From: Carpediemonas membranifera BICM
Taxonomy: Eukaryota > Protista > Fornicata
Reading direction: 5' to 3'
Assembly: GCA_019828565.1 (NCBI GenBank)
Contig: JAHDYR010000012.1
Span: forward strand, 1,359,780-1,423,779
DNA: 64,000 bases
In this document: positions 10,922 to 52,288 of the stretch, one piece after another
Layout: each line of letters begins with the position of its first letter
How positions within the stretch are numbered: position 1 is the first letter of the stretch
Made by a program: the position numbers and the translations under genes
The notes under the pieces: generated by a model
The model's database searches: none
What the model was told of the DNA's origin: nothing
The model's input: the letters and a program-made list of their open reading frames with translations, nothing else

Positions 10922-11042
10922 TCTCTCTTCTGATAAACATGTATACATACGGGCGGTATCGTTTACATAGGTCGGGGTCACCTTATCGCAGTTATGTGTC
11001 GGCGAATCGAGAGTATCCATGGTCTGACACGCTTATCATGTC

Positions 11043-11187
11043 TGTGCTGCGCAGGATTAGAATTGTTGAGTCCAAAACACACAGTGATCCAAGCAGCATC
11101 AGGATCGCAGTGTGGTTCATCATACTCTATCAATCGTGCGCTGCATATCACGCGCCGCTGCAGCGCGTGCTTGCTCAACTTAGCAAG
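11043..11187 (-). ncRNA. Putative Fanzor omegaRNA scaffold
   Basis: Consecutive stems directly 3' of the stop: CTTGCT/AGCAAG (11170-11187), CACGCGC/GCGCGTG (11149-11169; alternative pairing GCGCTGCA/TGCAGCGC), and CACAC-GTGATCC/GGATCGC-GTGTG (~11077-11114). The position matches TnpB/Fanzor guide-RNA loci. Confidence 0.5.
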
Positions 11188-13041
11188 TTAATGATAGCGA
11201 GGAAGAGCACCTCTCTGGGAGTCGTAGTGGAAAGGAGATTGCTCTATCTGATCTGAAGTTGCATCGTAGATGCACCAAAAGATGTTCTCGCTGGCGCTCT
11301 TATCTCGGTGAGAGAGATTGAGAAGAATGTCTCTCTGCTCGGGATGCCGACGTAGCCGTTCAACGCGCCATGGAGCTCCCTCGCACGCGGGATTCTGGCA
11401 GAGCATGGTGCGGTGTGTGTGCACCACACGTCGGAAGTGTGATTTGCAGTATGGGCACACGATGGAAGTGCGGAATTCGGAGATTATGCCAGGAAGAGCT
11501 CGAGCAAAGTGGCGGTACGGAGCACAGGAGGGAGTGCCGGCGGAACCGAACAGTGCAGCCCCATACGCGACTTCGAGATGAATGGGCTCCGGGGGGCGCC
11601 CGCCGAGATCATCCAGGAGTTGACGTCCAGCCCGGGCGAAGTGCTTCAGGCGCAGACAGTGATTGGCAAAAGTAGCACGGCGGAAACACTTTCTCGTCCC
11701 CTCGTTGATGATCTGAACGATATTCTCATGGACAAACCTAATCGACTGTTTGAGAGCCTCTAGACTTGTCGTTTTGAACGATGCTGCGCTCATATTCACG
11801 CGGAAAGAGGGGGTGGCAGTGTAGCCACACTTAGCGAGTACGCCAGATACACTCTGCCCGTCTGGGCGGCGGATCGTGTAGCCGCCCAGCGACCGAGCAC
11901 CAGGGTCGAAGCCCATGCGAGCTTGAATGTCCTGGGCAGGAGTAGCCTCGGCGTCATCCTGACCGAGCCGAGCCCGCTTGTTATTGCTACCCTTTTTGTA
12001 CGTGGGCCGGTCAGCCACCCGACCGCCACGGTATTTCTCGCGACCCACCCAAACCGTCACAGCAACAGAGACCCCGTCTGTCTTCACAGAGAGCACTCTG
12101 CGGAGCTTGGTGATGTCGCCGTGATCACGCTCGTATCTATCAACCTGCTCAGTGGTCTAGTTGCTCTTCGCTGACCAATCTTGATAGACACGGAGGCGCC
12201 TCTTCATCGCTGGGGTGAGCGACATATGACCGTACTCGATGGTCATGAACCCAGGCCTGACCGGTGCCATCGGAATGAGCTTCGGCTCTGGCAGGGCCTG
12301 ACTGAGCTCGAGGTTCACGGCACGAGTGAGTGTGACCAGCTTGGTCACTGCAGCACTCATGCGCGTGACGCACGACAGCACGCCGACGAGGGCCTCGGCC
12401 ACGGTACCAGTGCGACCCACCCGTTGCCCCTCGGGCGATGCATGCATTTGAGGATGATACCTGTCATGATCGGCGGCTATGGCGGCAACCTCAGTGTCGA
12501 GCTCGCCTAGGGTGTCGAGACAATCCTGTCGAACACCCGGCTGATCATGGAGGAGCGGACGCACCCGTTCTAATCCAGCACGAAGACGGGTCAGGTACCC
12601 GGGTGACGCGCGCGAGAGCCAGACCCGGGTGGCTGTGGAGTACTCACCCAACCAGCTCTGAAATGGCGCTGCAATTCCAACGTAGGCTTCCCTGAAGTCC
12701 TCGACGAGTGGGGTTATGTCAGGGTCCCTCCACATCGCCAGGTCGCCAATCCACCTGCACCGATCCGCTGCCTTTGCCTTGGACTCTCTTCCCTTGGCAA
12801 TGCTGACGATCTGCGCGAGGACCTCCTGGTCGAACAGGTTGACCGTCCTCGGTGGGGTCAACGCGTGCGCAGATGCAGAGACGCACGCAAGCAGGCAAGT
12901 GAATGTGTACTTAGCCTGCGTGAAAGAACGCATGCTGGGTTCAAGATTTCCTCGCCGCGGCGCGTTGTTATCACCTCCGCCGTTAATCTCGCCAATGGCC
13001 TTGTTAACGGAAGCCTTCACCGTGCATATCTTGGAAGGCAT
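11188..13041 (-). pseudogene. Fanzor1-type (eukaryotic TnpB) RNA-guided endonuclease, ~617 codons, with one in-frame TAG at 12157-12159
   Basis: The two track ORFs are in the same frame and separated only by TAG. Motifs: KTDGVSV, RuvC-I GFDPG, VAYGAALFG, RuvC-II ISEFRTS, zinc ribbon CPYC..CQNPAC, RuvC-III RDKSASENI. Confidence 0.9.
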
Positions 13042-13524
13042 CGGAGTCTATTGAGCTGCCTGCATCGATCATTTCTTTTCAGGGTTCATCAGCTAGCAGC
13101 ATCCCTCAAAACACAAGAAACCAGCATCATACAGCACAAAGCGTCTTTACTACCAGCTACAACCGCTTTCCACCACTAGTGTCTCTCACAACAGACTAAG
13201 ATGACGAAGACGACGACGACATGAGCTTCAGACGCCGGCAATGGACGACAGATGAGCGCGTAAACAGACGAGCACAGACGCGAAAGAAGACAGCAGCGTT
13301 CGACACAGACGATGGACGACAGACAACGCATCTTTTCGTGCAGACCGACGACTGAAAGCACGAAAGCCCGATGGTACAGACGAGGGCTGAAGTGGGTGAG
13401 TGGAGGTAGTGTGCTGCGCAGGATTAGAATTGTTGAGTCTAAATACCATGTCATCATGTCCATACCGTAAGCTGCGAACACACTTTGCATGCTTAGAAAG
13501 AGCTCAAAGCCCTCCAGAACACTA

Positions 13525-16393: not shown

Positions 16394-18109
16394 ATGTCGG
16401 CAGAAAAGAAAGCTCTTGGCGTAGCCGCCTTCAGTGCTGGAAACTACGCTGATGCTGAGAAGTATTTCACTGAAGCTATTGAAATGGACCCCACGAACCA
16501 CCTCCTCTTCGGAAACCGCGCTGCGGTGTTCGCTAAGGTTGGCAACTACGAGAAGTCTCTTGCTGATGCGCAGCGCTCTGTTGAGATTGCCCCGAATTAT
16601 GCCAAGGGCTACAACCGCGTTGCCACCGCCTACCAGTATCTCAACAAGGTCGACGAAGCCATCGAGGCCGTCGAGAATGGCCTCAAGGCCTGCCCCGGCG
16701 ACGCCTCTCTCACCCAGCTCGGCGACCAGCTTCGCCAGTCGGCCATGAGCGGCGCCATCATGGGCCTCTTCCAGCAAGCATTCGCCAGAGACCCCAGCCT
16801 CGCCCAGGATGCCGAGGTCTCCGGCCTCATGCAGGAGATGCAGTCCCAACCCCACCGCATCGGCGAGTTCATGCAGGACCCCCGCATGCGGCGTGTGGCA
16901 TCCGTTGCCCTGAGCGGCATGACCGGCCCCGACCAGGCCCAGGCCCAGGAAGGCGTCAGGACCTGCCCTAGGACAGGCAAACCGTGCGGATGTGCCCACC
17001 ACGACGACCACGAGTGCCACTGCCACGAGGCCCCGCGGTCTGCTCCTGAGCCCACACCCGCCCCGGCGGCCGCCCCCCAGCCCGAGCCGGAGCCTCTCAG
17101 CGAGGAGGAGAAGCTCAAGCAGGAAGCTGATGCCGTGAAGGACGAGGGCAACAAGCTGTACAAGGCGCGCCAGTTCGACGAGGCTATTGCGAAGTACGAC
17201 GCGGCCATCTCAATACTGGACCTCAGCGCCTTCCACCTCAACAAGGCTGCGGTGTTCATGACCATGGACCGTCTCGAGGAGGCGATGGCCGAAGCGAAGG
17301 AGGCTGAGCGTATCGCGTGGGACCGTCGTGACACGCCCCTCCAGAAGAACAAGTGTCTCACCCGTATCGGCGCCATCCTCGAGAAGATGGACCGGCTGCC
17401 CGAGGCGATCGACATGTACAACAAGGCGCAGCTGGAGCACCGCGAGAAAACTACGCTGGCGAAGCTGCGGGCCGCGGAGAAGCGGCTGCGTGTGTGGAAG
17501 GAGGAGCAGTACAAGGACCCAGAGAAGGCCGCCGAGGCCAAGGCAGAGGGAAACAGGCTCTTCTCCGCGCAGGATTACCCCGCCGCGATTAAGGCGTTTA
17601 CCGAGGCGATCAAGCGGGACCCGTCGGTGGCCATTTACTACAGCAACAGGGCTGCCTGCTACCTGAAGCTCATGGAGTACCGCCTGGCCGAGCAGGACTG
17701 CGAGAAGGCGCTGGAGATCGACCCCAACGCAGTGAAGGCCCTCCTACGTATGGGCAGGGCGCAGTTCTTGACCAAGCGCTACCACAAGTCCCTCGACACA
17801 TTCCAGAAGGCCGCGGCGCTCGATGGAACTAACCAGGAGGTGCAGCAGGGCCTTAACGACACCGCCCAGCAGATTATGCGGCTCCAGACTGGCCAGATGC
17901 CCGCCGACGAGGTCGCAATGGTCCGGGAGGCGTCCCTCCAGGACCAGGAGGTCAAGGACATCGTCGAGGACCCCGCGATGGCCCAGATCCTCCAGAGCAT
18001 GGCCAACCCGCAGGCCATGCAAGAGCACATGAAGAACCCCCTCATCGCGGCCAAGATCTCCCGGCTGATTGCCGCGGGTATGGTCCAGACGGGGTCCCAG
18101 CCCATGTAA
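16394..18109 (+). CDS. STIP1: STI1/HOP Hsp70-Hsp90 organising protein
   Basis: TPR1-DP1-TPR2A-TPR2B-DP2 layout: KDEGNKLYK, YSNRAACYLKL, DPAMAQILQSM..LIAAG. Confidence 0.95.
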   Translation: MSAEKKALGVAAFSAGNYADAEKYFTEAIEMDPTNHLLFGNRAAVFAKVGNYEKSLADAQRSVEIAPNYAKGYNRVATAYQYLNKVDEAIEAVENGLKACPGDASLTQLGDQLRQSAMSGAIMGLFQQAFARDPSLAQDAEVSGLMQEMQSQPHRIGEFMQDPRMRRVASVALSGMTGPDQAQAQEGVRTCPRTGKPCGCAHHDDHECHCHEAPRSAPEPTPAPAAAPQPEPEPLSEEEKLKQEADAVKDEGNKLYKARQFDEAIAKYDAAISILDLSAFHLNKAAVFMTMDRLEEAMAEAKEAERIAWDRRDTPLQKNKCLTRIGAILEKMDRLPEAIDMYNKAQLEHREKTTLAKLRAAEKRLRVWKEEQYKDPEKAAEAKAEGNRLFSAQDYPAAIKAFTEAIKRDPSVAIYYSNRAACYLKLMEYRLAEQDCEKALEIDPNAVKALLRMGRAQFLTKRYHKSLDTFQKAAALDGTNQEVQQGLNDTAQQIMRLQTGQMPADEVAMVREASLQDQEVKDIVEDPAMAQILQSMANPQAMQEHMKNPLIAAKISRLIAAGMVQTGSQPM

Positions 18110-18804
18110 GCATGTAAATCGTTCCGTAGATGACGAGTGTTGAGCGGGGTGCCTCTTGTGCGTCATGTCCCTGTGATCTGATCCAAGATATGGTACCACA
18201 TTTTGTATCTCAAGATTGATGGAGTGACATCACTAACCGAGCATATTCGGGTGCTGTATGAAGGTCATGTAGCACCACAGTGGCTGTTAGTGGTGTCACT
18301 TCACCAACCTGAAATGCGTGGTCATTAGTGCCAAAGCATCACACCCTAATCCAGCACCCGATGTCTACCATTGACGACACGAGGCCGTCGGTGTCATACG
18401 TGGCGAGGATAACCGTGGTTGCCTCATTGGTAGCTGCCATATGCGGTGGGCCAACCCTGATTGTCAGCAGATTCTAGTGCAATCAGGATGACTTGGGAGT
18501 ATAAACCGCAGAGACGGGTTTCCTGACGCTGTATTGGCGTCCACCAGTAGCTATACAGGCAGTTTCCCTGCCCGCCATCATTGATACGGCCGCCCATCAA
18601 TATCACGATTTCTGGATTGAATCTGCAGGAGAAAATCGCAACCCAAGTCATACGTTCCCGTCGTCATTTTTCTACATTTAATTGCCATTTAGGAGTCTAT
18701 TCATGCGCCCCAACGTCGGCCATCGTTTGATTCGGGATCGCGCAAAAAGTCGAATTTTTTTTTCATGCTGCAGGCCAGTGAAGCGAGTGAAAGAGCCCGA
18801 GCGC

Positions 18805-20811: not shown

Positions 20812-21189
20812 GACCAGGAGGTCAAGGACATCGTCGAGGACCCCGCGATGGCCCAGATCCTCCAGAGCATGGCCAACCCGCAGGCCATGCAAGAGCACAT
20901 GAAGAACCCCCTCATCGCGGCCAAGATCTCCCGGCTGATTGCCGCGGGTATGGTCCAGACGGGGTCCCAGCCCATGTAAGCATGTAAATCGTTCCGTAGA
21001 TGACGAGTGTTGAGCGGGGTGCCTCTTGTGCGTCATGTCCCTGTGATCTGATCCAAGATATGGTACCACATTTTGTATCTCAAGATTGATGGAGTGACAT
21101 CACTAACCGAGCATATTCGGGTGCTGTATGAAGGTCATGTAGCACCACAGTGGCTGTTAGTGGTGTCACTTCACCAACCTGAAATGCGT
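20812..21189 (+). repeat. 378-bp direct duplicate of the STI1 3' end and downstream sequence (17942-18319)
   Basis: Reads as identical from GACCAGGAGGTCAAGG to GAAATGCGT; the copy abuts the start of the retroelement pile. Confidence 0.95.
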
Positions 21190-24140
21190 TGTTACCGCCT
21201 TCATGGACGATGGGGCGCGTTAGAGCGTGGCTGTGTCGTGGAGTCGCCAGTAGGGGCGGCGCTGGTGGAGCGGTGGGGGTGTTGAGGGGAAGGACACCCT
21301 CCACCTCGATCTGCTCGACCCCGTCTGTCACCACTGCGACAAGGGGTACTTGGTCAGTGGTACGGCCCCCATGGCGTGGGACTTAACCCGTGATCCCGCC
21401 TGGCTGGCTGGGCCGGATGCCTTTGGGAAGGCGCTCTTGATCTCAGGGAATTCATCTGCGCACCAAGCAAGGCCGAACTGGTTCGGCTTGTTGATCATGA
21501 TGTGCCGGGGCGAAGAGATTGGAACATTTACATAAACTGCGGACGTGGATGCCTTATGACATCCTACCCCCCTTAAGCTTGAGCTTGTGGGACTTGAGGT
21601 AGTCACGTGCCGCAGTGACGTGGCGGAGCCCGTCAGCGGGTTCCCATGTGGGATCGTAGTCGCCCTCCCAGCAGACGAGGAGCTGCAGTGTGCCGTTGCG
21701 GCGACGGTGCTTCTCGATGCCTTGCACGACGTACGTCTGCTCGTCGGAGGCGGCGAGGTTCTTCAGGCGGCTGAGCCCCGACTTGGTGTTGAAAGGAAGG
21801 ACCTGGTCTACGTGAGCCATGAAGGGGGCGCTCTCGAAAAGGTCGACCAGCTGAAGGGTGTTGTTGTCCTTGATGGCGAGAATCTTGAATGGGCCGGCGA
21901 AGCCATGCAGCTTTGGGGTCTTCGTCCGGTTGAGCAGGACGAGGTCGCCTTCCTTGAAGCTAGTCGGCTGGCGGTCGGCGTTGGCCTTGGCGAGGCGCTT
22001 GTCTACAGTCTCGCGCTGCTTCTCGGCCGCCCTAGAGGTCAACTTGGAGAGGTGGGCTCGAAGTAAAGTGATGTAGGCTGAGGCTGAGGCAAGGGGCGAG
22101 TCATTGTCGCTCGGTCGGAGGATTCTAGCGACTGTGGAGCTGGGGTCGAGTTGGTCTCCATACAGCATGGCGTGGGGTGTGACCCCAGTGGCGCTGCAGG
22201 TGGTTGTGTTCAGCAGCAGCTGAACTACCGGAAGGAGGTCGCTCCAACGGGAGAACTTGTCGAATTGGAGGATCAAACAGCGAAGATGCTTCATGACCTC
22301 CGCGTTACGACGCTCTACCAGCCCATTCGACTGAGGGTGGTAGGGGAGGTGAATTGCTGGGTGATGTCCGCGCTTTCGAGCAGGGCCTTGACGACGTTGC
22401 CGGTGAACTCAGGCCCGTTGTCGGACTTGATGAACAGGGTGTAGCTCTTCTAGGATCCTCAATGAACGAATGAACTGCTTTAACCTGCGGGGCAGACCCA
22501 ACTATAAATATCACATTACACCGCCTTCCCGTGGCTGACCCGCAGTCAAGTAGGCATCTAGCGCCTCCAGCCGAGCCACCACGTAGTAGGGCTCCCACGA
22601 GCTGGACCCGTCTGCCCACTCGACCCAGTACTCACGGCCCTGGACCTCGGAGTCCCGATGGTCCGTAATCCGGAGCACCATCAGCTCTGCAGCATCTCTC
22701 CCATTCAACTCCACTAACTGCTGTTCCGACAGTCGATCTGCTCGGAATGACTTCAGGCGGTCATTGTGAACGTCAATCTGCAAACTTGTGTCCTCCAGGC
22801 TCTGCAACTTGCATCCATGCTCCATTACCCCCAGAACCTTGTACGGTCCCTTCCATGTCGGCAATAGCTTCGCTGTTCGCACTCCTGGTAGTACCATGAC
22901 TAATTGTCCCACTGTCCAGGACGGCACTGTCCAACCCTGCATGCGCCGCTCACGTTGGGCCAACAAACGCTGCTGTACCTCATTGGCTTGCTTCCGAACG
23001 TCCCGTATGAATAGTTGCTGCTCCTGATCCGCCTCCTCTACGTCCAGTTGGATCTTCGCCTCCACCGCCCTTGGCATAGTGCCATGCGGCTCTGGGCCGA
23101 ACATGCCTTGCATAATAGCTGCGGCTGTCGTCCCTGTGGCGCTACAGAACTCAGTATTCAGCTGTCGCTGGACTATGGGGATATACTTGTGCCACTGCTC
23201 AGGCTCGCCCCAATCCAACACCATACCCCGCAACCGTGATAATACCCTGCGATTCGCCCGCTCACACCCTCCGTTCCCAGGGGGATGGTACGGGAATGTC
23301 GTCGTCTGGCCAGAGCCGAAACGTTGCAGGATCTCCTTGATAGTCTCGTTGAGGAACTCCGTCCCTTGATCGGAATGCAGAGTCTTCATGGGTCCGTGAC
23401 GCGCAATCCACCATGTTACAGCCTCTGCTGCTGACTCCGCTGTCTTGTCCTTGGTCGGGAAGATCTCCAGCCACCGGGAGAATAGGTCCACCATTACGAA
23501 CACGTACTTGTGACCCTCCTCGCTCTCCGGCGTCACCTTCATAGTATCGATTGCTACCTTCTGCATCGGGCCGTCAACCATCTCTGTGCCCATCTTCAAC
23601 TTCACAGTATCGACCGAGGCAAGCTTCTGACAGGTACAGGTCGAGACAAACATCTGCACCTGGTCCCACATTCCCTTCCAGTGGTACCCCTTGTGCTTAA
23701 GCGTGTGATACGTCGACAGACGCCCCAGGTGTTCGCCCTCGCCCTGGTGTGCCCATGTGATCAGTTGCACCTTGTCATCCTCCGTCAGCTCGCCCCGCGA
23801 TGCCCGTAGGCTCATCTCTCGGCGCCGCTCGGCGTCGGCCTGTGCCTCGCGAGAGTGATCCTCTCTGGGTTCCTCGACTTCGACTTCTTCCTCCGCGCTA
23901 TCCTGCACTGGTGAGTCTTCGTCGTCGCTCGCTATCTGGTAAAACTCATCGTCCATCAGTCGCTGCGGTGGTCTACGGGTCCTAGCGGGCCTATCGCTCC
24001 TTACTTGCTGTACAAATGCCCGTGACAGCGCATCCGCCACTACATTCTTCTCTCCAGCAACGTGAACCACGTTGAAACTGAATTCCTGCAGCAGTAGCTT
24101 CCAGCGTTGCACCTTCTGACTCGCGGCCTTCCGCTCCATA

Positions 24141-27100
24141 TGTGCCGAATCAAGGCAAGAACTGGTGAAGTGGTTTAAACTGACAAAACTCACTGGAGCA
24201 ACGAGACAGGAAACGCCACATCCTGCCCCTCCTCAAGATCCTTGAGGATTAGCTTGCCCTTGGGGTGGTTGGCCAGACTGGCCATCGGCTCCTCGGTGGC
24301 CTCCGAGGCCGGGAAGCCATCCCATTCGATCAGAAATGTGTGAGCGTCTCTGTCGCAAGACAGGATGCGGGATGGGAGGAACTCCTCCCGATCACCGACG
24401 GCAAACATTCGCATCTGCTCAAGCGTGGCGTCGGCGTCAAAGAGAAAGAGCTTGTCCTGGTGGACAGTGCGCTCCGACAAATCGACAAGATGCTGAATGG
24501 TGACAGCCTTGTTTTCCCCTATGCTGACCACCTTAAAGGGGCCAATGGCACCGTGGAGCTTGGTCTCTCTCTCGTTGGCTAGGAGGACGAAGTCGCCCGC
24601 TTTGAACTGCGCTGTGACAGCGGATCTTGACCTGATGATGCGCTCCTGCTTCGCCACCGCCTTCGCGCGCAGCCCGTCAAGGTACGACTGAATGTCGGAC
24701 ATGTAGTCGTCCAGAGAAGCCAGTGGCTCGGTCTCGGCCCTGTCAGCCGGCTCGTGTACAAACGTGAGGCCGGAGGGGTAGCCGAAGAGGAGTTGGTGCG
24801 GGGTGAACCCCGTTGCGGAGTGACGAGAGTGATTGATGACATGTTGCACGTACGGCACCAGCGGGGACCAGTTGCTGTGTGTGTTAAACTTCGCGCAAAG
24901 GAGGCGGAGATGCCGTTTGATCTCGTAATTCACGCGCTCTACGATCCCGTTCGACGCCGGGTGGTACGGCAGAGTGCGGTGGTGTGTAACGTTGAGGCGT
25001 CTGAGGAGGGCATTGAGGACCCTGTTCACAAACTCCGGGCCATTGTCAGTCCGAATTGTGGTTGGTAGGCCATGTCTGCCCATGATGGCGGTCCAAATTG
25101 CCCCTGCGACGGAGTCCGCGGTGTGGTTGGGCATGGGTACAAGCTCCACATAACGCGTGAATGCGTCAATGATGACCAGGATAAACCTGTTGCCCCATGC
25201 GTCTGTGTGAAGGGGGCCGACTGTGTCGACCGAGACGGTGTCAAACGGTGTGTGTACCATGGTGGACGCGAGAGCCGACTCTCTGAAACGGGCGAGTCGC
25301 GCCTTCTGGCACAGGGCACACTTGCTCACGTAAGAACGACAGTCGTCGATGACGGCTGGCCAGGTGAAACCCATCGCGCGTAGGTTAGCGGCTGTGTTGA
25401 CGGCGCCGGCGTGGTAGCGGTGGGCCTCGGCGATGAGCTTCGCCTTCAAGTCGGTAGCTCCCTCGGGGATAACGGCGACCCCATCGTGAACGTGGAGACC
25501 GTCGGCGTCAGTGGGCAGGCGCGAAACCGAGGGGTCGGCGGCCTGAGCTGCTCGCACCTCCGTGGACAGGTTGACGGCCGCAACCACGGGTGGCCGCGAC
25601 AAACTGTCGGCAACGACATTGTCTGCGCCCTTGACATGCTCGATGGAGTAGGGGTACTCCGCTAGTATCGTTCGCCAACGAGTGAGCTTCCGATTGCCTT
25701 CCTCGCTCTTGATGACCATAGTGACGAGGTTCTTGTGATCCGTGCGGATGAGGAAAGGTTTGAGCTTCAACAGAGGAGCTAAATCTGCCCGGGTAACACA
25801 ATGTATGATCCCGTATAGCTCCTGGTCCACAGTGGCCCATCTGCGCTGGGTTTCTGTGAACTTGTGCCCGAAAAAGGAGATGGGGAGTCGCGACTCGTCA
25901 TCGGAGACCTGCCATAACACACCGCCGCAGGCAACGTCGGAGGCATCCGTCTCCAGGATCCAGGTCTTAGAGACGTCCGGCAGAGCCAGAATGGTGTCGG
26001 CAGTCGCGCGGCGCTTCAGTTCAGCGTAGGCCGCATCGTGAACCTCCCCCCACTGCATGGTGATGTCTGCCTCGGGGCGGAGTAGTTGGTGGAGCGGCTC
26101 GGCGGCCTCGCTCAGCCCGTCGATGAAGCGGGCCAGGAAGTTAAACTTGCCGAGAACTCGGCGAAGCTCCTTGATGGTCGTGGGCCGTGGCATATCGAGC
26201 AGGGCCTGCTTACGGCTCTCGGAAACACGATGGCCATCGCGGTTGAGCACGAAACCGAGGGCTTCCGTCTCGGGTGCACCAAGGGTGCACTTTTCGGCCT
26301 TCAGCCGAAGACGGTGCTGGCGCAGGCGTGTCAGTAGTTGTCGTGTTCTGGCGAGGTACACTTCGGCGTCGTTGGCATAGTTCAATATGTCGTCGACGTA
26401 GACGCTCGTGCCCTCCACTCCGCGAAGGGCGTCATCCATTGCACGTTGGAAACGTCCAGGGGCGTTCGTGAGGCCAAAAGGAAGGCGCACGTACTCGAAC
26501 TGACCCCCTGGTACGACGAACGCCGTCAAGGAGCAGACAGAAGGGTCGAGGACCATCTGATTATACCCCGAACGCAGGTCCAGGCTGCCAAAGAACGAGC
26601 AACCTGATGCGCTGTTGATGAAATCACGGGTGTCCGGGAGCGGGTACGCGTCCTTGACCGTGACCGCGTTAAGGGCGTTGTAGGCCACGCAGAAGCGCTT
26701 CTGGCCGCCCTTCTTGTCCGTTAGAACGTGTGGGGACGCGACCGGGCTGACGCTCGGTCGTATGATGCCCTCGTCCAGCAGTCGCTGGATCTCCTGCTGA
26801 ATTACGTCGAGGTGACCCTTGATGGGTCGCGGCTTAGCCTTGGCAGTGAAAGGCTCCTCGAGTTCAAGTGTGAACGGTGTGAGGGTAGACCCCTCAGGCG
26901 GCAGGACGGGGTCGAACAACTCGCGGAACTCGTATACCAGGTCGACAAGCCGGTCGTGAAGCGGACCGTCAGGGATAGTGACCTTCTCAAGCTCCGCCGC
27001 AATGCGGACCTCGGCTTCTCGAGCGGGCTCGGCAGAGTCGGACCCAAGGTAGCCGATCGCCTCGATATCATCCTCATCGTCCGGTGGAGCCTCCGTCGGA

Positions 27101-28850
27101 ATGATCAGTGCCGAGTCAGTCAGCAGTCCTACCTCTCGGAGGACGTCCCGGCCCAGCAGTACGGAGTGCCCTTGGCCTTCCAGAACGGAGAAGTTCCAAG
27201 TTAGGGAGAGCGTCGTGTTGGCACCTGGCATGGTGAGCTGTAGAGGGACCTGGTCTGCTGCGACGGTCACCTGGTTGGCGACCTTCAGGTCGATGGTACC
27301 AACCGGGGAAGTCGGCTGCTTCGAAACAGCTGCGATAACATCGCGCGTACCCTCGCTGACACAACTGACCGCTGCGCCAGTGTCTAGCTCGGCTGTCCGG
27401 ACCCCGTTGAGGGTGATGTGGACCCGGATGGGCTTAGAGTCGGGGGTTGCCACCTGGTTCACAGGCGCCTCCACCGCATGGACGACCATGTTGGGGAACT
27501 TGTTCTGTGGCGGGTTCTGGCGGAGGCTCATGGGGTGTGTCTTGGTGGCGGCGGCTGGCTGAGTCGTCGCAGTCGGGGTGACAGTGATCTTAGGCTGGGC
27601 CAGCGAGCACTTGCTACGCTCGTGGCTTCCCCAGCGACCGTGAAGATCACACCACGTCATCCCCTCGAATGGCGGCTTCTTAGGGTCACACCATCTTGCG
27701 GCGAACGCGGCTGAGACCGCTGAATCGTCCTTCGAGCCCTTCGATGCTGGGGCTCTAGGGCCGTGGGTAGCTTTGGCAGCGCCCTGAGGTCTCGGTTGAG
27801 TGGGCGTGCGGGTGGTCGCGGGCGTCTTGGGTGCTGTAGCGGCAGACGGGGCGACCGAGGTTGACGTGGCAGGTGGTGCCACAGTGGCAGCCGGAGGTTG
27901 GACCTTGGGCTGTGTGGGAGTGTGGGCGTAAGTGGCGGCCCGTGTTGATGCGACCTCCAGGGCGCGGAGCTCGCTTACGAGGTCAGTGGCGAGCGCGGTC
28001 ACAGTCGTATACTTCTGGAGGGCCGTTAGGGTCTCCAGAACCGCACGTACCGTGTGTGGGGCCGCGCTCTTGCAGGATGACTCGAAGGACCGCAGGACTG
28101 CACGCTTCGGCAGCCGGTCGGAAGGGTCGAGCCAGCGGTGGAGAGTGTCGTGTTCGGCGGCCACCCAAGCGACCTGCGTTGCTAGCTCGTGGGGGCAGCG
28201 TCTATCAGTCCAGAGGGCGGTGCCCTTCTGGCCGAGCTGACGGAGGAGAAGTGTAGGGTCCTCCACGGCGAAGGCCGCTGCCACAGTCTTCTTGACCGTG
28301 GCAAGGTCCTCCTGGCAGACTGCCAACTCGGCTGCCAGGCTGGCGATCGTCGTAGGTGGAACAGCCGCTCGCAGGCTCCAGGCGGCATGCAGTTGCACCA
28401 AGGGCGCGAAGCGGGTGTCCAGGGCGAAGTGGTGACACCACTTGCCAAGGTTGGAGAGGATGCTCTCAGCAGTTGGGTACTGGAGCACATGGCGTTCGTA
28501 AGCCGCCAAGAATGCCCGCCAATGATCCTGGCTCAGGCTCGAAAGCTCCTGCCCGAAACGGGGGCGCTTTAGAGAGCTGAGCGGCACGGCAGGCGTAGTG
28601 GACACAACGGAGGATGAAAGTTGCTGACGAAGGGCATCTATCTGCCCCATCAAGTAATCGACGGACTTGGTGGGCGCAGAACTCTCGATGACAGTGACGA
28701 GATCCTCCTTAACATGAGTGGATGCAACATCGTCAACAACAGGTACCTCAATTTCCGATAATGTCGACATTGTGCCGAATCAAGGCAAGAACTGGTGAAG
28801 TGGTTTAAACTGACAAAACTCACTGGAGCAACGAGACAGGAAACGCCACA
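24141..28850 (-). mobile_element. Intact chromodomain Gypsy element C (4710 bp), 80-bp LTRs (24141-24220, 28771-28850), TSD CATA
   Basis: Identical LTRs, PPT GAGGAGGGGCAGGA, and a single uninterrupted ORF. Confidence 0.96.
24190..28770 (-). CDS. Gag-Pol polyprotein of element C (1526 aa)
   Basis: WCDLHGRWGSH..C knuckle, LDTGA protease, LPFGL..YVDD RT, ETDASD RNase H, HHCC, DTVGP/TDNG/VERVN integrase, GPF, chromodomain. Confidence 0.96.
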   Translation of the reverse strand: MSTLSEIEVPVVDDVASTHVKEDLVTVIESSAPTKSVDYLMGQIDALRQQLSSSVVSTTPAVPLSSLKRPRFGQELSSLSQDHWRAFLAAYERHVLQYPTAESILSNLGKWCHHFALDTRFAPLVQLHAAWSLRAAVPPTTIASLAAELAVCQEDLATVKKTVAAAFAVEDPTLLLRQLGQKGTALWTDRRCPHELATQVAWVAAEHDTLHRWLDPSDRLPKRAVLRSFESSCKSAAPHTVRAVLETLTALQKYTTVTALATDLVSELRALEVASTRAATYAHTPTQPKVQPPAATVAPPATSTSVAPSAATAPKTPATTRTPTQPRPQGAAKATHGPRAPASKGSKDDSAVSAAFAARWCDPKKPPFEGMTWCDLHGRWGSHERSKCSLAQPKITVTPTATTQPAAATKTHPMSLRQNPPQNKFPNMVVHAVEAPVNQVATPDSKPIRVHITLNGVRTAELDTGAAVSCVSEGTRDVIAAVSKQPTSPVGTIDLKVANQVTVAADQVPLQLTMPGANTTLSLTWNFSVLEGQGHSVLLGRDVLREVGLLTDSALIIPTEAPPDDEDDIEAIGYLGSDSAEPAREAEVRIAAELEKVTIPDGPLHDRLVDLVYEFRELFDPVLPPEGSTLTPFTLELEEPFTAKAKPRPIKGHLDVIQQEIQRLLDEGIIRPSVSPVASPHVLTDKKGGQKRFCVAYNALNAVTVKDAYPLPDTRDFINSASGCSFFGSLDLRSGYNQMVLDPSVCSLTAFVVPGGQFEYVRLPFGLTNAPGRFQRAMDDALRGVEGTSVYVDDILNYANDAEVYLARTRQLLTRLRQHRLRLKAEKCTLGAPETEALGFVLNRDGHRVSESRKQALLDMPRPTTIKELRRVLGKFNFLARFIDGLSEAAEPLHQLLRPEADITMQWGEVHDAAYAELKRRATADTILALPDVSKTWILETDASDVACGGVLWQVSDDESRLPISFFGHKFTETQRRWATVDQELYGIIHCVTRADLAPLLKLKPFLIRTDHKNLVTMVIKSEEGNRKLTRWRTILAEYPYSIEHVKGADNVVADSLSRPPVVAAVNLSTEVRAAQAADPSVSRLPTDADGLHVHDGVAVIPEGATDLKAKLIAEAHRYHAGAVNTAANLRAMGFTWPAVIDDCRSYVSKCALCQKARLARFRESALASTMVHTPFDTVSVDTVGPLHTDAWGNRFILVIIDAFTRYVELVPMPNHTADSVAGAIWTAIMGRHGLPTTIRTDNGPEFVNRVLNALLRRLNVTHHRTLPYHPASNGIVERVNYEIKRHLRLLCAKFNTHSNWSPLVPYVQHVINHSRHSATGFTPHQLLFGYPSGLTFVHEPADRAETEPLASLDDYMSDIQSYLDGLRAKAVAKQERIIRSRSAVTAQFKAGDFVLLANERETKLHGAIGPFKVVSIGENKAVTIQHLVDLSERTVHQDKLFLFDADATLEQMRMFAVGDREEFLPSRILSCDRDAHTFLIEWDGFPASEATEEPMASLANHPKGKLILKDLEEGQDVAFPVSLLQ

Positions 28851-31800
28851 CATATATAGCAAGTTCCGATGGTCCGTCTCTAGGCGGAAAGGATAGCCCT
28901 GTAGGTACATTCTCCAGCGCCGCACGCACTCAACGATAGCACAGCACTCTTTCTCACCCACAGTCCATCGTGTCTCTGCCCCTCTGAACGCCCGGCTATA
29001 GACAGCGACTGGTTCCTCGCCCTTGTCCGTCTCCATGCATAGAATCCCTCCCAGACCGATGTCCGACGCGTCTGTTCTGACTATCAACGGCTTCTTATAG
29101 TCGATGTGTCAGCTTCAGGTGGTCCGCGATCGCTCTCTTCACATCGCTGAACGCGGCTTGCCTCTCGTCTGTCCAGGCCGTCTGTCGGTCCTTGAGTGCG
29201 TCATTCAGTGGGGCCAAATGCATCGCTAGGTCGGGGTGAACCCCTGAACCAGTTCGCCAAGCCAATAAACCTCCGCAGCTGCTTCTGGGTGGTCGGCCGC
29301 TCGAACTCTTGCACTGCCCGAACCTTGTCGTCACTGATCCTGACACCGTCCTGGTCGATAATGTGTCCGAGGAACTCCACGCTCGACTGGGCAAACCTGC
29401 ACTTCTCCAGGTTCGCGCGCAGCCCGTGCTTCTTGAGTCGGTCAAGCACAGTCCTGATTCGATCTCTCATCTCTTCCCGTGAGTTCGCCATTATCAGGAT
29501 GTCGTCAATATATACCAACACACCGGGAATTCCCTTGAGTACGTCGTCCATCGCCGTCTGAAAGAACGCAGGAGCATTCTTCAACCCGAACGGCAGTCTC
29601 TCGAACTCGAACAGGCCGAACGGCGTGATGAACGCCGTCTTCGCGCGGTCTTGCTCCCGAACTGCGAACTGATTATATCCCGATGTGAGGTCCAGTGTCG
29701 AGAACAGCTTTGCCCCCGCCAATTGGGCTAGTAGTCTCTTCACGTCCTTCACGGGCGCGGCCAGGGTCTTCGTTGTCGCATTCAGCCGGCGGTAGTCGAC
29801 GCATAGTCGCCACGTGCCATTCTTCTTCTTAACCAATACGATAGGTGACGCGTAGCCGGACGTCGACCTCCGCACTATACCCTGCCTGAGCCACTCTTCC
29901 ACCTGCTTCTGCGCCACCTCTTCCATCACGGGAGATAGCTGTCTCGCGGGTTCTCGAATCTCTTGCTCCGTCATTAGGTCGATCGGGTAAGGCGGCGCCT
30001 TTGCCGGCTCTGGCCCTAGCGGCCCGAACACCTCGCCGAACTCAGTCAGCATTGAGCTAAGCTGAGGGTCCTTCTCGGCCAGACTGTGCCGGAGTTCCGC
30101 ATGTGCCTGCTGCACCCGGAACATCTCCTCCACTAGCTCGGCCTCTACTTCGCCCTCGTCCGCGTCGTCCGTGTCCTCTGCCAACAGGCCCAAGTCCTTG
30201 ACCGTTTGGAACGGAATCAGCGTGTCTGTCACTCCGGCACACCCATACACGGTCACCCGTGCCTGCACATACGTGCCGAGCCCTCGGGCCTTCGATCGCC
30301 CGATCCATACCTCGCACGCATTGTCTGGTCTTCGTCCGTCTCCTGTGAAAGTCTGGATCACCAGGTCGTCCGGAGGGTGACCTCTCGTGCCCCTGCGTGC
30401 ACCCGTGCGGCGACCCAGGCTGGGCTCGCCACAGCAACGTTCGCCCGCGTGTCGGGGCCGACGCGCATCCGCACCGCCGGCTTCTTCGGATTCACGCGAA
30501 CATCCATAACCAACTCCCACGTGTGTGCGTACTTCTCAGCCTTTACAGACTGCACCTTCCACCGCGGGTGACCTTCGGGGATAGGGCCCCGGGTCAGTCG
30601 GCCGTACTGCTTCTTGTCCTTGTCGTACTCCCGGTACCAGCCGTGGAGCAGCTCCGCATCCTTAGCCTGGCAGCGGCCAACCTTGTGACCCACTCCGCCA
30701 CAAGCATAACACTTGAACCTGGCCTCCCGTACACCCGCGCCTTGAGACGATGTCTGAGCCTCCTTCCGCTCAACCGGCTCATCTTGCCGGGTCTTGGCCT
30801 TCTTTCCCGGTCGGGTGACCAGGCCAGTGCGAAGCGCCTTCGCGATGCACTCATCGTAGTCCTCGGCGAGTTCCGCTGCCCGGGCCTGAACCTTCTCGAG
30901 GGTATCGTCGCTGACACCCTCCCTCTTCAGGTCCTCTGCGAGTGCTGTGTTCTGGATCAGCTTGCGGTACGTGCGGATAGTCTCCTTCGGCTTGGGCGTC
31001 GCCGACTCGGTCACGTACTCGAGGAACTGATTCACACGAGCGTTGACCAGCGAGACGCGTTCCTTAAGAGAGTCTCCCTTGTACGAGACCTCCACCTGCG
31101 CCATCTTGGTAAGTGTGTCCGCCGCGTCCACGGGCGACACGATGTTGGTCAGAGCGGTACGTAACTGGTCCTCCGCATCGACCGGGCCGCTCCTTCCCTT
31201 CAGCTCTGCCTCAACAGGCGCCACGAGTTGGGTCATCTTCCTGGTCCCACCAGCAGACTTGTACTCTGTGAAACGCTTGAGGAACCACCGCACACTGGCC
31301 TCCTTGAGGTCCCGCAGTGTTGGCGCCTCTTGGACGCTGGCCTCGAGCTGCACGTTACCACTTTTGGCTTCAAGAGCCGCAGTGAGCTTCTCGATCATCT
31401 GCGCCTGTCGTTCCGATAGGGCCATGAGCTTCTCTAGGGTTCCGCTTGATTCATTGTTGTTGTTAGCCATTGATCAATGTAGCTCTTCTAGGATCCTCAA
31501 TGAACGAATGAACTGCTTTAACCTGCGGGGCAGACCCAACTATAAATATCACATTACAAGGGGAGTCCCATGACGGGTAATCACCTGGCGCCAGAGGGCC
31601 TCTGACGCTGCATCAGCTGTGTTCTCGTCCGTCGCGGCCAACTCAGTGTAGCGAGTAAACATATCGACCATAACTGTGATGTATCTGGAGCCGACTGCGT
31701 CTGCCGGGATTGGACCAATAGTATCCACTGCGACAGTGTGGAACGGTTTGTACACTGCTGTTGTGCGGAGCTCTGCCTCGGCGAAGTTGCGTAGGCGAGC

Positions 31801-34800
31801 TTTCTGGCACTCGTCACATGAGGCGATGAACTCCTCGACATCTGTTGTGCAGCCTGTCCAGGTATAGCCGTCTGCTCTCAGGCGTTCGATGGTAGCCTTG
31901 GCGCCGTGGTGTCCTCTGTGGGCGATCTGTATCAGCTCCTTTCGGAGGGGTCTGCACACGGTTGAAGTAGGGATGACGACGAGGCCGTCCTTGCGGCGAA
32001 GACCGTCGCTGTCTACGGTCAGCTTGGAGACGGTAGAGTCGTCTGTCTGGTGTTTGATGAGTGTGTCATGGTAGCGGGAGTCAGTCGTGATGGCTGCGAC
32101 AGTGGGCGAGGTCGAGTGACCGCAGCGGCTCAGCGCGTCTGCGACTGCGTTCTGTAGGCCGGGAACGTGCTCGACATCGAACTTGTAGTCTGCTAATGTC
32201 AGTCTCCACCGGTTGATCTTGTCGTTCTCGGATGACTTGGCGATCATGTAAATAAGATTACGGTGGTCGGTCCGTAGGAGGAACCTCTTCAGGCGTAGGA
32301 GGGGTGACAGGGTCGGGTGTGTAAGGCAAAAGACAATGGCAAATAGCTCCTGCTCACACGTGGCCCAGCGCGACTGGGTTGACGTGAATGTGTGAGAGAA
32401 GTAGGCGAGGACCTGTGTCTTGTCGTCCTTTGTCTGCCATAGTACGCCGCCTGCTCCGATGTTGCTAGCGTCTGTCTCGAGCGTCCAGTCGGCGTCGGCG
32501 TCCGGATGTGCGATAAAGAGATCGTCAGTGAACAGGGTCTTCAGGCCGTCGAAAGCGGCGTCGTGCTCCGCTGTCCATTCCCACAGACGGTCCTTTTGCA
32601 GAAGATCGTTGAGAGGTCTCGTGTACTCGTGTCGTGTATGGGGAACGAATGATGCGAGGTACTGGAACTGTCCGAGGACTACGCGAAGCTCGTGGACGTT
32701 GGTGGGTGCAGGTAGATCGCGTAGGGCTTGGGTCCTGGCTGGGTCGACGTGTACTCCGGCCTGGTCGACCGTAAAGCCGACAATCTTGGCGCTGGTGGTG
32801 CCGAAGACTCCCTTCTTGGCGCTGAACTGAACGCCTGCAGCGTCCGCGCGTGTGAGCAGGTCGCGGAGAATGCGTAGGAAGGAGTCATCGTCACGGGCGT
32901 AGATGAATATGTCGTCGATGTAGGGGTTGGCGCCCTTGTACAACAGTGGGGCGAGCATGCCTTCGATCTCCCGCTGGAAGTGAGAAGGCGCGTTGCAAAG
33001 GCCGAACGGCATCCTGAGGAATTCCTCGTAGACGCCCGGGGCGGTGAAGGCCGTCTTAGGCACGTCGTCTGGGTGCATGGCCACCTGCCAGTAGCCCGAC
33101 GTCAGGTCTAGCGTCGCAAAGCGTGTGCAGCCCGACGCGAGGTTGAGGAGTTCTCGCATGTTGGGGATCGGGTGCCGGTCGGGTACTGTCCAAGAGTTGA
33201 GGCGGCCGTAGTCGATACAGAGACGGTAGGCGTCGCCCTTTGCGACCAGGACGATGGGGCTTGCGTAAGGCCCCTCAGAGGGCTGTGTGATCTCGTCCTG
33301 GCGCAGGCGCTCGACGTATGGCAACAGCCACTCCAGCTTCTTCGGGTGTAGGTTGCGCGGGCGAAGACGGATCGGAGGGGCGTTGTCGTAAAGCGGGATG
33401 CGCATAGGGGCAAACGAGCACGGCTGTTTGCTTATGACGGGGTCGAATAGGTGATCGAACCGACGGAGGATCGAATGTAGCTCGTCGGTCTGGGCCTTGG
33501 TGGAGAGCTCGTGTATCTCACACGCGTCGGTGTGAAACTCGCTTGAGGAGACGGCCTCGACGGGGGCGTCGAGGTACTTGTGGAGTGGGAGGCCATCGGT
33601 GGCGTCCTCCGGGCGTGAATCCGGAAGAAGTGGGATGTGGAGGCCACTCTCGGAGAGACAACCGAGCGCGCGAAGCACGTCGCATCCAATGAGCACACGT
33701 TCAGTGGCGCGCGTCATGATGTAGAGGATGAGATCGACGATGACGTTTCCAGATGTGCTGGGCAACGTGATCCGCGCTTGGACGTAGTGAGTGATGAGGA
33801 TGGGCTCATTGGTAACGGACTGAACAGTAAATGGCTTTTCAAGCTCATGTGTGACGAGTTGGAGCGTCTTAACGGAGGTTGTGGAGATGATCGTGATTGC
33901 GGAGCCGCTATCGATCAATATCACCTGTTCTTGGTCATTCACAGCTCCCTTAACTGAGAATGCAGTTGAAGCGGCAACTTCTTCGATAAAGGCATCATCA
34001 CAAGCATTGTGTGCGACTTCGACTTCGTGGACTCCTGGACGAGAGTTGATCAGCTTGGATCTGTCCCGGAGCACCATGTTCCCAGCGCGTCTCTCGTCGG
34101 GGCGAGGCTGTGGCTGCTGGGATGACTGTTGCTGCTGCTTCTGAGCAGCTGGTGCCGGCTGTGGCTGAGCCGGTTTGTTGGCCGCTTGGGGCTGGCGTTG
34201 CGGCTGAGGTGCCGGTCTGGCGTCGCGGGCCGCGGCGGGGTGGCCTTTGGTAGCCTGGGGCTGTCCGGGCGTGCTGCCGCGGTGCGGGCAATCAGCCTTC
34301 CAGTGCATGCCTCCACAGGAGCACGCGTATGGAGGAGGGCGCCGGCGCTCGCGGCGGGATCTGGTGTTGGCGTTCTGGCTATGTTTCGGGCCAGTGCTGG
34401 AGCTCGTGATGGAGCTCGTGCTGGAGGATGTGATGGATATGTCTTGAATCACGCTTCCGAGGACTTCACGGGCGTCAATGGCGTGCAGTATGAGCTCGCG
34501 CGTGTGCACAAATAAGCTATCGATGTCCCGGGCGCCAGAGAGGTCCCACTTTTGCTGAATACGGTTGGCAAGTGAGACCGGGCGAAGGGCGGCGATAAAA
34601 GCTTTGGCGATGATCTTATCGAGTCCGCGGGTGGGGCTGGCTTTTCTCGGGGTGTCCTGCTCACTCGGCGTGCTGTCTGGCTTCTGGGTGATGACCTTGC
34701 TGAGGGCGGCCTCGTCTTCATCCACCTCGGCGGGCTCGGGCTCTGGCTTGGCGCCGAGCTCGGCGTTGAGAAGGGCATGGGCGTGGGAGCGCAGCTCCTC

Positions 34801-35204
34801 GGTCTCAGCCATGAGACGAGATACGGCCTCGATCGTGGACTTGGTTCGGTCCTGCGTGAGGGCCCGGATTTCTTGGATGGTTTTCTCAAGGGTTCTCGGG
34901 AAAGAAAGAGCGGTGATTTCGGCGAGAAGTTCTGCGTCGTTGAGTGCTTCGACGTCGACGTTGCGGACAAATCGGACATGACTGACTTGATCCTCGGTGA
35001 GGCACTCGTAAGCCGTTATGACGGTTGTGGTAGGAGCATGCTTCTGCGCGAACGTGAGGGCGCGTTTGAACGCGCGAACGGACTCTCTAGAGAAGTCCGA
35101 TAGTGATGGCGGAATCCAATTATTCATTTCGGAAAGTGATCACTGTGCCGGGGCGAAGAGATTGGAACATTTACATAAACTGCGGACGTGGATGCCTTAT
35201 GACA

Positions 35205-42306: not shown

Positions 42307-42518
42307 GATGTCGGTTACAGCGTCCAGCTGATCGGCCCCGAAGCCGACCATGGGGTTGGGCGCCCCCGACTGACGGGTGGTGGCGGCGAACCATGCATTG
42401 CGTAGCACGGTCGTGGCCTCCCTGAGGCCCGGGTTGGCGGGGGCAAGGGCCTCGATCCTGCCGATCCACGTCTCAAGATCCTTCGATTGGACGCTCGTTT
42501 CGATCGAGTCGGCCCAGG
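42307..42518 (-). repeat. ~212-bp inverted near-identical copy of 43586-43797
   Basis: The same peptide WADSI..SVQSKDLETWIGRIEAL..DQLDAVTDI is encoded on opposite strands, with few mismatches. Confidence 0.92.
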
Positions 42519-47772: not shown

Positions 47773-47805
47773 GATAAAGGTTTGGATTGAGTAGCTGCTG
47801 AAGGT

Positions 47806-51756: not shown

Positions 51757-52288
51757 GGCTTGAATTTCTAGAAATGTAGTCCGTTAGGGACAAGAACACT
51801 TTATGAGGAAAAGAGACGACACCAAATGTGTCGACAGAAACCTGAAGACGATGTAAATAATACAACTATGTAAATATTGGGTAAGACCCACGACAAGGTG
51901 TGGATCTCAGCTCTCTGCACGGCTCGCTGCGGTGGTCGCTCGAACACTTCCAATAAGCACCCGCGAACGGGATTAACGGCATCGGGATGGTATTGGGCCC
52001 GCGACGGCTTCCCTAGCTCCGTCGCGCCTGCTGCCACGACACGATGTGGATCACGGCACTCCTATACGCGAATCTCACGATCCCTAATTCGATCCGTTAA
52101 ATTCCCGAGTCTTCAGCATGAACATACACGTACCAGGCCAGAAGCCTAATAGCATACCCACATTACCGCGGTGTGCTTGAAAATGGCACTTAGAGGCTTC
52201 AAAGCGGCTTCTACGCCGAGATACACCCATTCCGCTTCCCCCATGCGAGTTGTTGGCTCGTAGCCGTTGAAACTGCTCGCATCGGTCA

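Follow-up and report, generated by a model that had tools for sequence, protein, structure and literature searches.

The prevailing view of Fanzor and TnpB nucleases is that they help cut-and-paste transposons to persist although these excise themselves. Among retroelements, the SIDE elements with R2-type partners and the short interspersed nuclear elements (SINEs) that depend on long interspersed nuclear elements (LINEs) take the 3' end, the target and the duplication of the partner LINE and use its proteins in trans, and they carry no protein gene. In U6/L1 chimeric retrocopies, template switching by the reverse transcriptase (RT) joins a complete second RNA to a variably truncated LINE 3' segment within one pair of target site duplications (TSDs). 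In our study, a 64-kb stretch of the Carpediemonas membranifera genome (contig JAHDYR010000012.1; the whole stretch is called the window) was analysed for a decayed Fanzor-like gene lying between two short direct repeats, and the family to which this element belongs was followed through the genome. The Fanzor carrier SPu-1 of Spizellomyces punctatus, which encodes SpuFz1, has inverted repeats and TA duplications (PMC3627910, PMC10432273). According to a 2026 review, no retrotransposon is known to encode a Fanzor, and an element moved by an R2-type LINE would be a type of Fanzor carrier undocumented there (PMC13565253).

The Carpediemonas element resembles SPu-1/SpuFz1 in its size of about 2.1-2.4 kb with a single Fanzor1-type open reading frame (ORF) of about 634 amino acids, in the conserved non-coding RNA region that runs from the 3' end of the gene to the end of the element, and in the presence of dozens of copies which are about 92-97% alike. 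Gene-less short derivatives are also found in both, as 'ghost' elements in SPu-1 and as repeat-plus-tail elements in Carpediemonas. However, SPu-1 is built as a DNA transposon, with inverted repeats of 30-33 bp and putative TA duplications; in the Carpediemonas element the repeats are direct, the TSDs measure 5 bp, the 3' end is of LINE type and a promoter motif is strictly targeted, and the two proteins are too diverged for a direct sequence match. With SIDE elements and SINEs it has in common the LINE 3' end, target and duplication as well as the proposed dependence on LINE proteins, but it differs from these in that an antisense nuclease gene, about 1.9 kb long, lies between its two 34-nt repeat copies. 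Like the U6/L1 chimeras, it is joined head to tail to a variably truncated LINE 3' segment within one TSD pair; unlike them, the chimera recurs and is inherited, with about 100 copies making up the family, and the RNA that is joined comes from a mobile cassette and not from a cellular snRNA.

The best explanation, to which we give about an even chance, is that the element is a LINE-dependent retroelement inserted by target-primed reverse transcription. The first-pass annotation of the window had described the Fanzor gene as packaged antisense in a non-autonomous element with miniature long terminal repeats (LTRs), mobilised in trans by Gypsy enzymes. Its view of an antisense Fanzor in a small non-autonomous retroelement-like unit moved by something else has been retained, whereas Gypsy as the mover and the LTR cycle have been given up.

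The element family and its LINE-derived right ends

The genome searched comprises 24.2 Mb in 69 contigs, and many loci were read solely as 35-nt pattern matches. At least 20 full-length and many partial copies were found in a family of about 100 copies, together with about 210 repeats genome-wide, half of them in right-hand context. The copies form a star-like set with 94-98% pairwise identity and 1.3-3.7% distance from the consensus. Every copy begins exactly with TGTGC, adjoining unique DNA. The possibility, raised at the first pass, that the repeat is a long TSD and not an element end is answered by the about 100 copies which carry it beside different flanks; the guide-proximal end also adjoins new flanking DNA at each insertion, as had been expected.

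The left and right repeats were found to differ constantly in their last 11 nt across copies. Moreover, two repeat variants (A and B) exist, and the left-B/right-A combination is present at five independent loci (L012-L016) with different TSDs, hence the repeats are passed on unchanged and are not regenerated in each cycle. Regenerated, identical terminal repeats as in LTR elements are not seen in the Fanzor element, and neither are the terminal inverted repeats and superfamily-specific TSD of Fanzor-carrying DNA transposons (SPu-1, Mariner, hAT and similar), as only five of the six terminal nucleotides are inverted and the long repeats are direct.

In most of the copies, the right repeat and TAAA are followed by 50-475 nt of conserved sequence with a variable left border and a constant right end, CTCTAAATACCACA. 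The breakpoints of these tails differ in nearly every copy (56 junctions are listed genome-wide), with the 3' end constant. The tail consists of the C-terminal coding region, stop codon and about 60-nt 3' untranslated region of a plus-sense ORF, in which a CCHC motif is followed by a D..D..K pattern; by this motif pattern alone, the nuclease of the tail is a putative restriction-like endonuclease. At another place in the genome there is a 1367-aa ORF whose residues 1054-1289 match the tail ORF (E 7e-12); it has RVT_1 at 644-879 and Bombyx R2 (8GH6) as its only solved relative, and a copy 98.6% identical to the tail family has RVT_1 in a 629-aa ORF. No LTRs were found beside these two RT ORFs, and a search with the tail protein gave more than 100 matches piled at the C-terminus, as 5' truncation would give. 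From these sequence comparisons, the tails are assigned to an R2-type non-LTR retrotransposon. Two tail subtypes, A and B, are distinguished.

The terminus of the Fanzor element itself is also of LINE type. Its last 7-13 nt are the LINE 3' end, the terminal TCTAAATACCACA being identical to the tail end, and this 3' end is common to the element and an RT- and endonuclease-bearing LINE. In the short forms (the window copy, L020, G000:C26:871304 and G000:C39:1073397), TAAA is directly followed by TACCA(CA), the last 5-7 nt of the LINE end. The joints between repeat and tail are mostly without microhomology and some carry 1-9 extra bases (nine in L035 and L037), which is the pattern that end-to-end template jumps of an RT produce. 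The 3' terminus is slightly variable (TACCA, TACACA, ACCACA, extra A's and TAA repeats), as RT initiation would give, and the terminal heptamer tends to track the tail subtype: all four listed ACAC-type B tails end in CGCTACA, and A tails mostly in TACCACA.

Within G000:C39:1073372-1073431, the sequence after a short-form end reads TCCAC, then a 27-nt piece of a B tail, then TCCAG. This fragment of LINE only, with the same site and duplication, shows that the LINE uses the target and the duplication by itself, and it could not have been inserted by an integrase. L045 resembles another such event, and on these few examples the target and duplication of the element are the same as in the LINE's own insertions.

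Some other readings of the right end were considered and rejected. The 1367-aa LINE (L062 family) is not the direct partner, its 3' end (…TTCATAAA) and flanks being different. The conserved sequence to the right of the second repeat does not reflect insertion into another repeat, as the left flanks are unique and the TSDs lie outside the composite as a whole. The fixed boundary at TAAA was not attributed to splicing either, since GT...AG is absent from the joints.

Further arrangements of LINE and repeat sequences were seen elsewhere. A tandem array at G000:C8:931006-935355 (L055, L056, L059) has a 2.08-kb period made of a host promoter region and a 415-nt LINE tail, and keeps the repeat and part of Fanzor in the last unit only. 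At G000:C21:77761 and G000:C60:10069, both read as 35-nt matches, 3' ends of the 1367-aa LINE family adjoin partial repeats of a second Fanzor family (family 2, described below), hence LINE-repeat junctions recur in a second LINE/Fanzor pairing. A 46-nt TG...CA repeat ending in CTAAATACACA is present at L062:5312-5357 (G000:C10) and ten other places as 100%-identical pairs 2-9 kb apart, which look like another mini-LTR-type element; the C10 pair encloses the 1367-aa R2-type LINE, with 4 nt separating the 3' end of this LINE from the right repeat.

Target site, nuclease gene and candidate guide RNA

At 15 loci, exact 5-bp TSDs were found outside the complete unit, which begins with the left repeat and finishes with the LINE-type 3' end. 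Six further ones (GGTGA, TTTGG, CATGG, AAGAC, AGGCG and CAGCC) came from a pattern search, giving 21 independent copies in total, and two copies ending in TACCA (C5:412952/413299 and C7:36924/35992) have 7-bp TSDs. In 30 distinct right flanks, CATAAACTGCAC occupies +11 to +22 in one orientation, the insertions lying 10 nt upstream of this motif, and the TSD and positions +6 to +10 are unconserved. The motif is enriched about 20-fold in the window (10 matches against 0.48 expected), and a host cDNA 5' end at 13480 begins two bases after the 12-nt motif at 13466-13477. The enriched form (C)ATAAACTGCA(C), the consensus of the 30 loci, has ten sites in the window (for example 4767, 35914 and 40577) and probably serves C. 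membranifera as a core promoter or initiator element. No constant target-adjacent motif (TAM) is visible, as the empty-site bases adjoining the would-be guide match are unconserved, and the homing into empty alleles suggested at the first pass therefore finds no support in the sequence. Choice of the target by Fanzor through a CATA-like TAM in the host motif was also rejected, as neither the side of the element on which the motif lies nor its distance from the guide is the right one.

The gene on the minus strand between the repeats is present in the window as two ORFs of one frame (12157-13041 and 11188-12096) split by a single TAG, and it has lost 12 residues immediately before the RuvC-II glutamate. 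Owing to the in-frame stop and this deletion, it is a pseudogene. An intact 634-aa version is found at locus L013, in which the RuvC D-E-D triad is complete, whereas the gene of the window copy is broken. Neither the halves of the window gene nor the intact L013 protein gave any direct match in Pfam or PDB, even at E 10. No significant match to PF07282 or to a solved Fanzor/TnpB was obtained either, the relatives of family 2 reaching only E 0.028-0.12. The evidence is thus remote: in a library of 1.8 billion proteins, a profile of the Fanzor family matches one outside protein, P0044 (E 4.5e-4), which has PF07282 above the cutoff and a match to SpuFz1 (8GKH). With hhalign, the family aligns to P0044 at 94.9% probability (E 4.6e-8), which bears out the Fanzor-like reading of the first pass. 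This alignment includes the RuvC-I aspartate, the Fanzor-type glutamate, the zinc finger and the RuvC-III RD..A..NI motif, and the catalytic motifs GFDPG / SEFRTS / HRDKSASENI align with GIDPG / NEFNTS / NRDVNAAGNI of P0044. In the stretch E-FRTSIV-CPYC then CQNPAC, the shifted RuvC-II glutamate stands six residues ahead of the zinc finger, and such a glutamate six residues before a CxxC...CxxC zinc finger is a Fanzor feature (PMC13565253). On these remote similarities, the gene is classed as a very divergent TnpB/Fanzor1-type nuclease. Its sequence relatives in a collection of 5.8 billion proteins are all from Carpediemonas membranifera, and an AlphaFold2 model from an 8-sequence alignment (mean predicted local distance difference test score, pLDDT, of 38) was too poor for a fold search.

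A second Fanzor family (family 2; P0014, with at least 80 matches) is 40-46% identical to the first. Its repeat (TGTTGCGCAGTRTAAACACATTGTTCGA…) is homologous to that of family 1, a purine tract precedes the right copy, and the short right end reads AATAGCACA; five right ends were read. It also has 5-bp TSDs and an equal distance to the host motif CATAAACTGCAC. Since the layout and the catalytic motifs are shared, both have been kept through long divergence. At L043 (G000:C4:365181-368371) and L049 (G000:C6:1725224-1728413), a left-end stretch of family 2 (CCCAGACAGGGCCTGAAAGGAAC) lies between family 1 sequence and the LINE tail, and these chimeras imply recombination or template switching between the Fanzor families.

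The left repeat, on the minus strand, forms the 3' end of a conserved RNA region downstream of the Fanzor stop. This region (11084-11187) together with the repeat has a consensus fold of -50 kcal/mol in which the repeat pairs with an upstream segment and the sites of the A/B variants are unpaired. No covariation was found in the folded scaffold region. The sequence between the stop and the left end is, from its position and fold, a candidate omega-RNA scaffold, for which the guide would be the flank below 11043. The RNA evidence comes from four small contig sets of one study, possibly cDNA; the sequencing runs are read as cDNA because of a poly(A) tail at 10949. Contigs from the four runs show that the Fanzor family is transcribed, and at other loci they cross the left boundary. 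Adaptor-tagged contig ends lie at 13480 (the host gene, in three runs), and at 13410 on the minus strand, where the right repeat has its inner edge; two more, on the plus strand, are at 11059 and 11069. The loose end CTCTGGACCTTGGCTGTCACTCAAA of the cDNA contigs was considered as a spliced leader and rejected, being absent from the genome and hence a library adaptor. The repeat contains a palindrome, CTGCGCAG, similar to the host motif, so the repeat might conceivably act as an initiator in both directions.

Proposed mode of movement and its rivals

In its own (plus) sense, the element consists of a repeat of 34-41 nt, the antisense Fanzor with its candidate guide-RNA scaffold, the second repeat and the LINE-type 3' end TCTAAATACCACA. 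Proteins of a resident R2-type LINE (RT, CCHC and restriction-like endonuclease motif) would move it by target-primed reverse transcription, making a nick 10 nt upstream of CATAAACTGCAC, the host promoter motif, and copying an RNA which ends in the LINE-type 3' end. Often they would start on LINE RNA and afterwards switch to the RNA of the Fanzor cassette at its 3' end, and such a jump would give every new copy its own length of LINE tail and would sometimes add a few untemplated bases where the two are joined. The sequences themselves establish how the element is built, that its tails and terminus derive from a LINE, where it inserts, its TSDs and a behaviour of the repeats that is not that of LTRs; an RNA intermediate, the template jump, the identity of the LINE that provides the enzymes and a role of Fanzor, if any, are inferred.

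A number of observations weigh against this proposal. The deletions are internal with both ends kept, and the left (5') end is almost never lost; in family 2, the surviving part is the C-terminal, left-end part. Such deletions are unlike the ordinary 5' truncation of LINEs and fit an enzyme which needs both ends, and the frequent 5' truncation expected of a LINE-dependent element is seen in the LINE part only and not in the Fanzor part. No RNA with the predicted ends (11043 and 13447) was found among the adaptor-tagged cDNA ends. No intact autonomous LINE of the exact tail family was found, and the RT-bearing copy is broken. LINE tails rarely occur without Fanzor or repeat sequence upstream, save in the tandem duplicates L056 and L059, so the LINE could instead target the right end of the element. 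Where the LINE 3' end is duplicated, the duplication stops at TAAA, and TACCACA occurs once only. The TG...CA termini and polypurine tract (PPT) of LTR elements are also present, a resemblance only, because both termini can be read as RNA 3' ends in CACA as well. The hairpin after the left repeat is also LTR-like, and Gypsy elements here truly have mini-LTRs of 61-121 nt.

Four Ty3/Gypsy elements lie in the window (21501-35204, 22440-31558, 24141-28850 and 45751-51895), and they encode protease, RT, RNase H and integrase. Their mini-LTRs measure 61, 81, 80 and 121 nt, three pairs being 100% identical and the fourth 96%, and all four have 4-bp TSDs (ATGA, AGGG, CATA and AGGT), in agreement with the first pass. 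Two of them sit inside other Gypsy elements, the nesting being three deep, and therefore are not promoter-targeted. Two of the LTRs begin with TGTGCC, as had been noted, and TGTGCCG (the first 7 nt, found in two LTR families) and CCACA are common to the Fanzor element and the window Gypsy LTRs. The Fanzor element is thus like these elements in its very short terminal direct repeats, TG...CA and a purine tract by one repeat, whereas the Ty3/Gypsy elements differ in having identical or 96% alike LTR pairs, 4-bp TSDs and enzymes of their own, and in two cases a position away from promoter motifs. The assumption that the Fanzor element shares the 4-bp duplication of a Gypsy partner does not hold, as the sister copies show 5 bp (21 copies) or 7 bp (2).

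The main rival explanation, which we regard as a tentative and rather unlikely possibility, takes the short form (repeat, Fanzor, repeat and TAAATACCACA) as the real element. It would be inserted via TG...CA by a DDE integrase acting in trans (Ty3/Gypsy-like or Ginger-like), and the LINE pieces of sister copies would have come afterwards, through nesting of a site-specific R2-type LINE in the right repeat between TCTAAA and TACCACA, with loss of upstream sequence in some cases. The constant retention of both ends with internal deletions, the near confinement of LINE tails to Fanzor or repeat contexts and the stop of LINE 3'-end duplications at TAAA would all be accommodated, as would the TG...CA termini, the TGTGCCG and CCACA held in common with the window Gypsy LTRs and the purine tract before the right repeat in both Fanzor families. 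Moreover, all five family 2 right ends that were read are without LINE tails, yet have the same TSD and target. On the other hand, an integrase would not usually leave TSDs of 5 and 7 bp or a ragged 3' end; the Gypsy elements examined, which are the four of the window, all make 4-bp TSDs, two of them are not promoter-targeted, and no matching integrase-bearing partner was seen among them. Further, the last 7 nt tend to match the subtype of the LINE tail, the 27-nt insertion of LINE only has the same site and duplication, and about 90% of the family 1 copies would each need to have acquired a LINE independently.

It is very improbable that DNA-level recombination or gene conversion among dispersed repeats and tails, with no dedicated enzyme, has spread the cassette to pre-existing promoter-proximal LINE insertions. 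The chimeras between Fanzor families and with LINE tails, and the elements of a single repeat plus tail which resemble recombination products, would agree with it, but the unique left flanks with a TSD matching the far right flank indicate that each composite arrived in one piece, and the copies are star-like at 1.3-3.7% from the consensus.

Mobilisation as a mini-LTR element through the ordinary Gypsy cycle (priming at a primer-binding site (PBS) and PPT, strand transfers, identical LTRs and a 4-bp TSD), for which the direct repeats with TG...CA, the PPT-like tract, the mini-LTR Gypsy elements of the window and TGTC on both sides had spoken, is scarcely credible, because an LTR cycle would homogenise the repeats, whereas the differences in the last 11 nt are constant and left-B/right-A persists across independent insertions, the family TSD is 5 bp and not 4, the promoter motif is targeted, most right 'LTRs' are R2-type right ends containing LINE sequence of differing lengths, and no tRNA-type PBS (starting TGG) is evident after the left repeat.

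The window copy, its surroundings and implications

The window copy is a decayed short-form pseudogene of the Fanzor element, and its features are collected in the table below.

Features of the window copy of the Fanzor element (positions in the window)
Feature	Positions	Strand	Remarks
Left flank, candidate TSD	11035-11042		Last 4, 5 or 8 nt (TGTC, ATGTC, ATCATGTC) recur right of the element
Left terminal repeat	11043-11083	+	30-nt identical core, then CAAAACACACA; 5' end in LINE sense
Conserved structured non-coding region, Fanzor stop to left repeat	11084-11187	-	Candidate omega-RNA scaffold
TnpB/Fanzor-like gene, decayed	11188-13041	-	In-frame TAG 12157-12159; 12-residue deletion
Fanzor 5' leader	13042-13388	-	Kept among copies; covered by cDNA contigs
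Purine-rich tract, PPT-like	13389-13409	+	Adjoins the right repeat; kept in all copies
Right repeat and TAAA	13410-13443	+	Sister copies join LINE tails directly after here
Short-form right terminus TACCA	13444-13448	+	Last bases of the LINE 3' end CTCTAAATACCACA; other copies also end in TACCA
Ambiguous junction and TSD copy	13449-13460		TGTC, then ATCATGTC; canonical spacing gives a 5-bp TSD at 13456-13460
Host target motif CGTAAGCTGCGA	13466-13477	+	Local version of the consensus CATAAACTGCAC

The direct repeats of about 39 bp with 30 identical positions, recognised at the first pass around the antisense gene, were located as 11043-11072 and 13410-13439, with identity over 30 nt. The match extends to 34 nt at 97% (11043-11076 and 13410-13443) and, more loosely, to about 39-41 nt. 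The 30-mer has only these two occurrences in the window, and a match was obtained in 0 of 100 shuffles. Past the core, the left repeat reads on as CAAAACACACA and the right one as TAAATACCA. That the repeats begin with TG is true of both; the ending is CACA in the left repeat and TACCA followed by TG in the right, unlike the TACCACA of the sister copies. The purine-rich tract abutting the right repeat (13389-13409) and the hairpin at the inner end of the left repeat were also recovered, the latter as a conserved stem-loop just inside this repeat.

TGTC is present on both sides of the element as described before, and the longer ATCATGTC is duplicated at 11035-11042 and 13453-13460, as in the 8-bp reading which the first-pass annotation had allowed; TSDs of 4 bp (TGTC) and of 8 bp (ATCATGTC) are both possible for this copy. 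The canonical geometry requires ATGTC (13456-13460) as the TSD, and 7 bases after TACCA then stay unexplained. The left neighbour of the element is a host gene whose cDNA is polyadenylated at 10949, and the right neighbour is a ubiquitin-conjugating-enzyme-like gene with its cDNA 5' end at 13480.

Several other features of the window were also observed. Each Gypsy element has a short palindrome next to its 5' LTR, at the PBS position (GTGATCAC, TTGATCAA, ATGTCGACAT and TTTCTAGAAA), which may point to an unusual priming mechanism. The 61-nt Gypsy LTR holds a promoter-type motif, ACATAAACTGCG (21528-21545 and 35171-35188), presumably its own promoter. A 1120-aa ORF at 42487-45849 on the plus strand combines RVT_1 with a phage-integrase-type tyrosine recombinase domain, as in a DIRS-like retroelement. 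A perfect duplication of about 380 bp (17942-18321 and 20812-21191, 2870 bp apart) comprises a coding 3' end and downstream sequence and is not an LTR pair.

A role for the nuclease itself can be put forward as speculation, with a low probability. Fanzor would be the working, selected cargo of the LINE-dependent retroelement, re-aimed at each jump by the new promoter-upstream flank, and it could cut unoccupied alleles or paralogous sites for copy-in by repair, or assist the second-strand step of the LINE. If true, it would be the first case in which the life cycle of a retrotransposon has taken in an RNA-guided nuclease. The family defines a compact promoter-proximal target motif in a metamonad. 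If its behaviour as a retroelement tied to an R2-type LINE is confirmed, it would provide a natural system in which a site-specific reverse transcriptase and an RNA-guided nuclease work at one genomic address, and a function of Fanzor independent of excision must exist.

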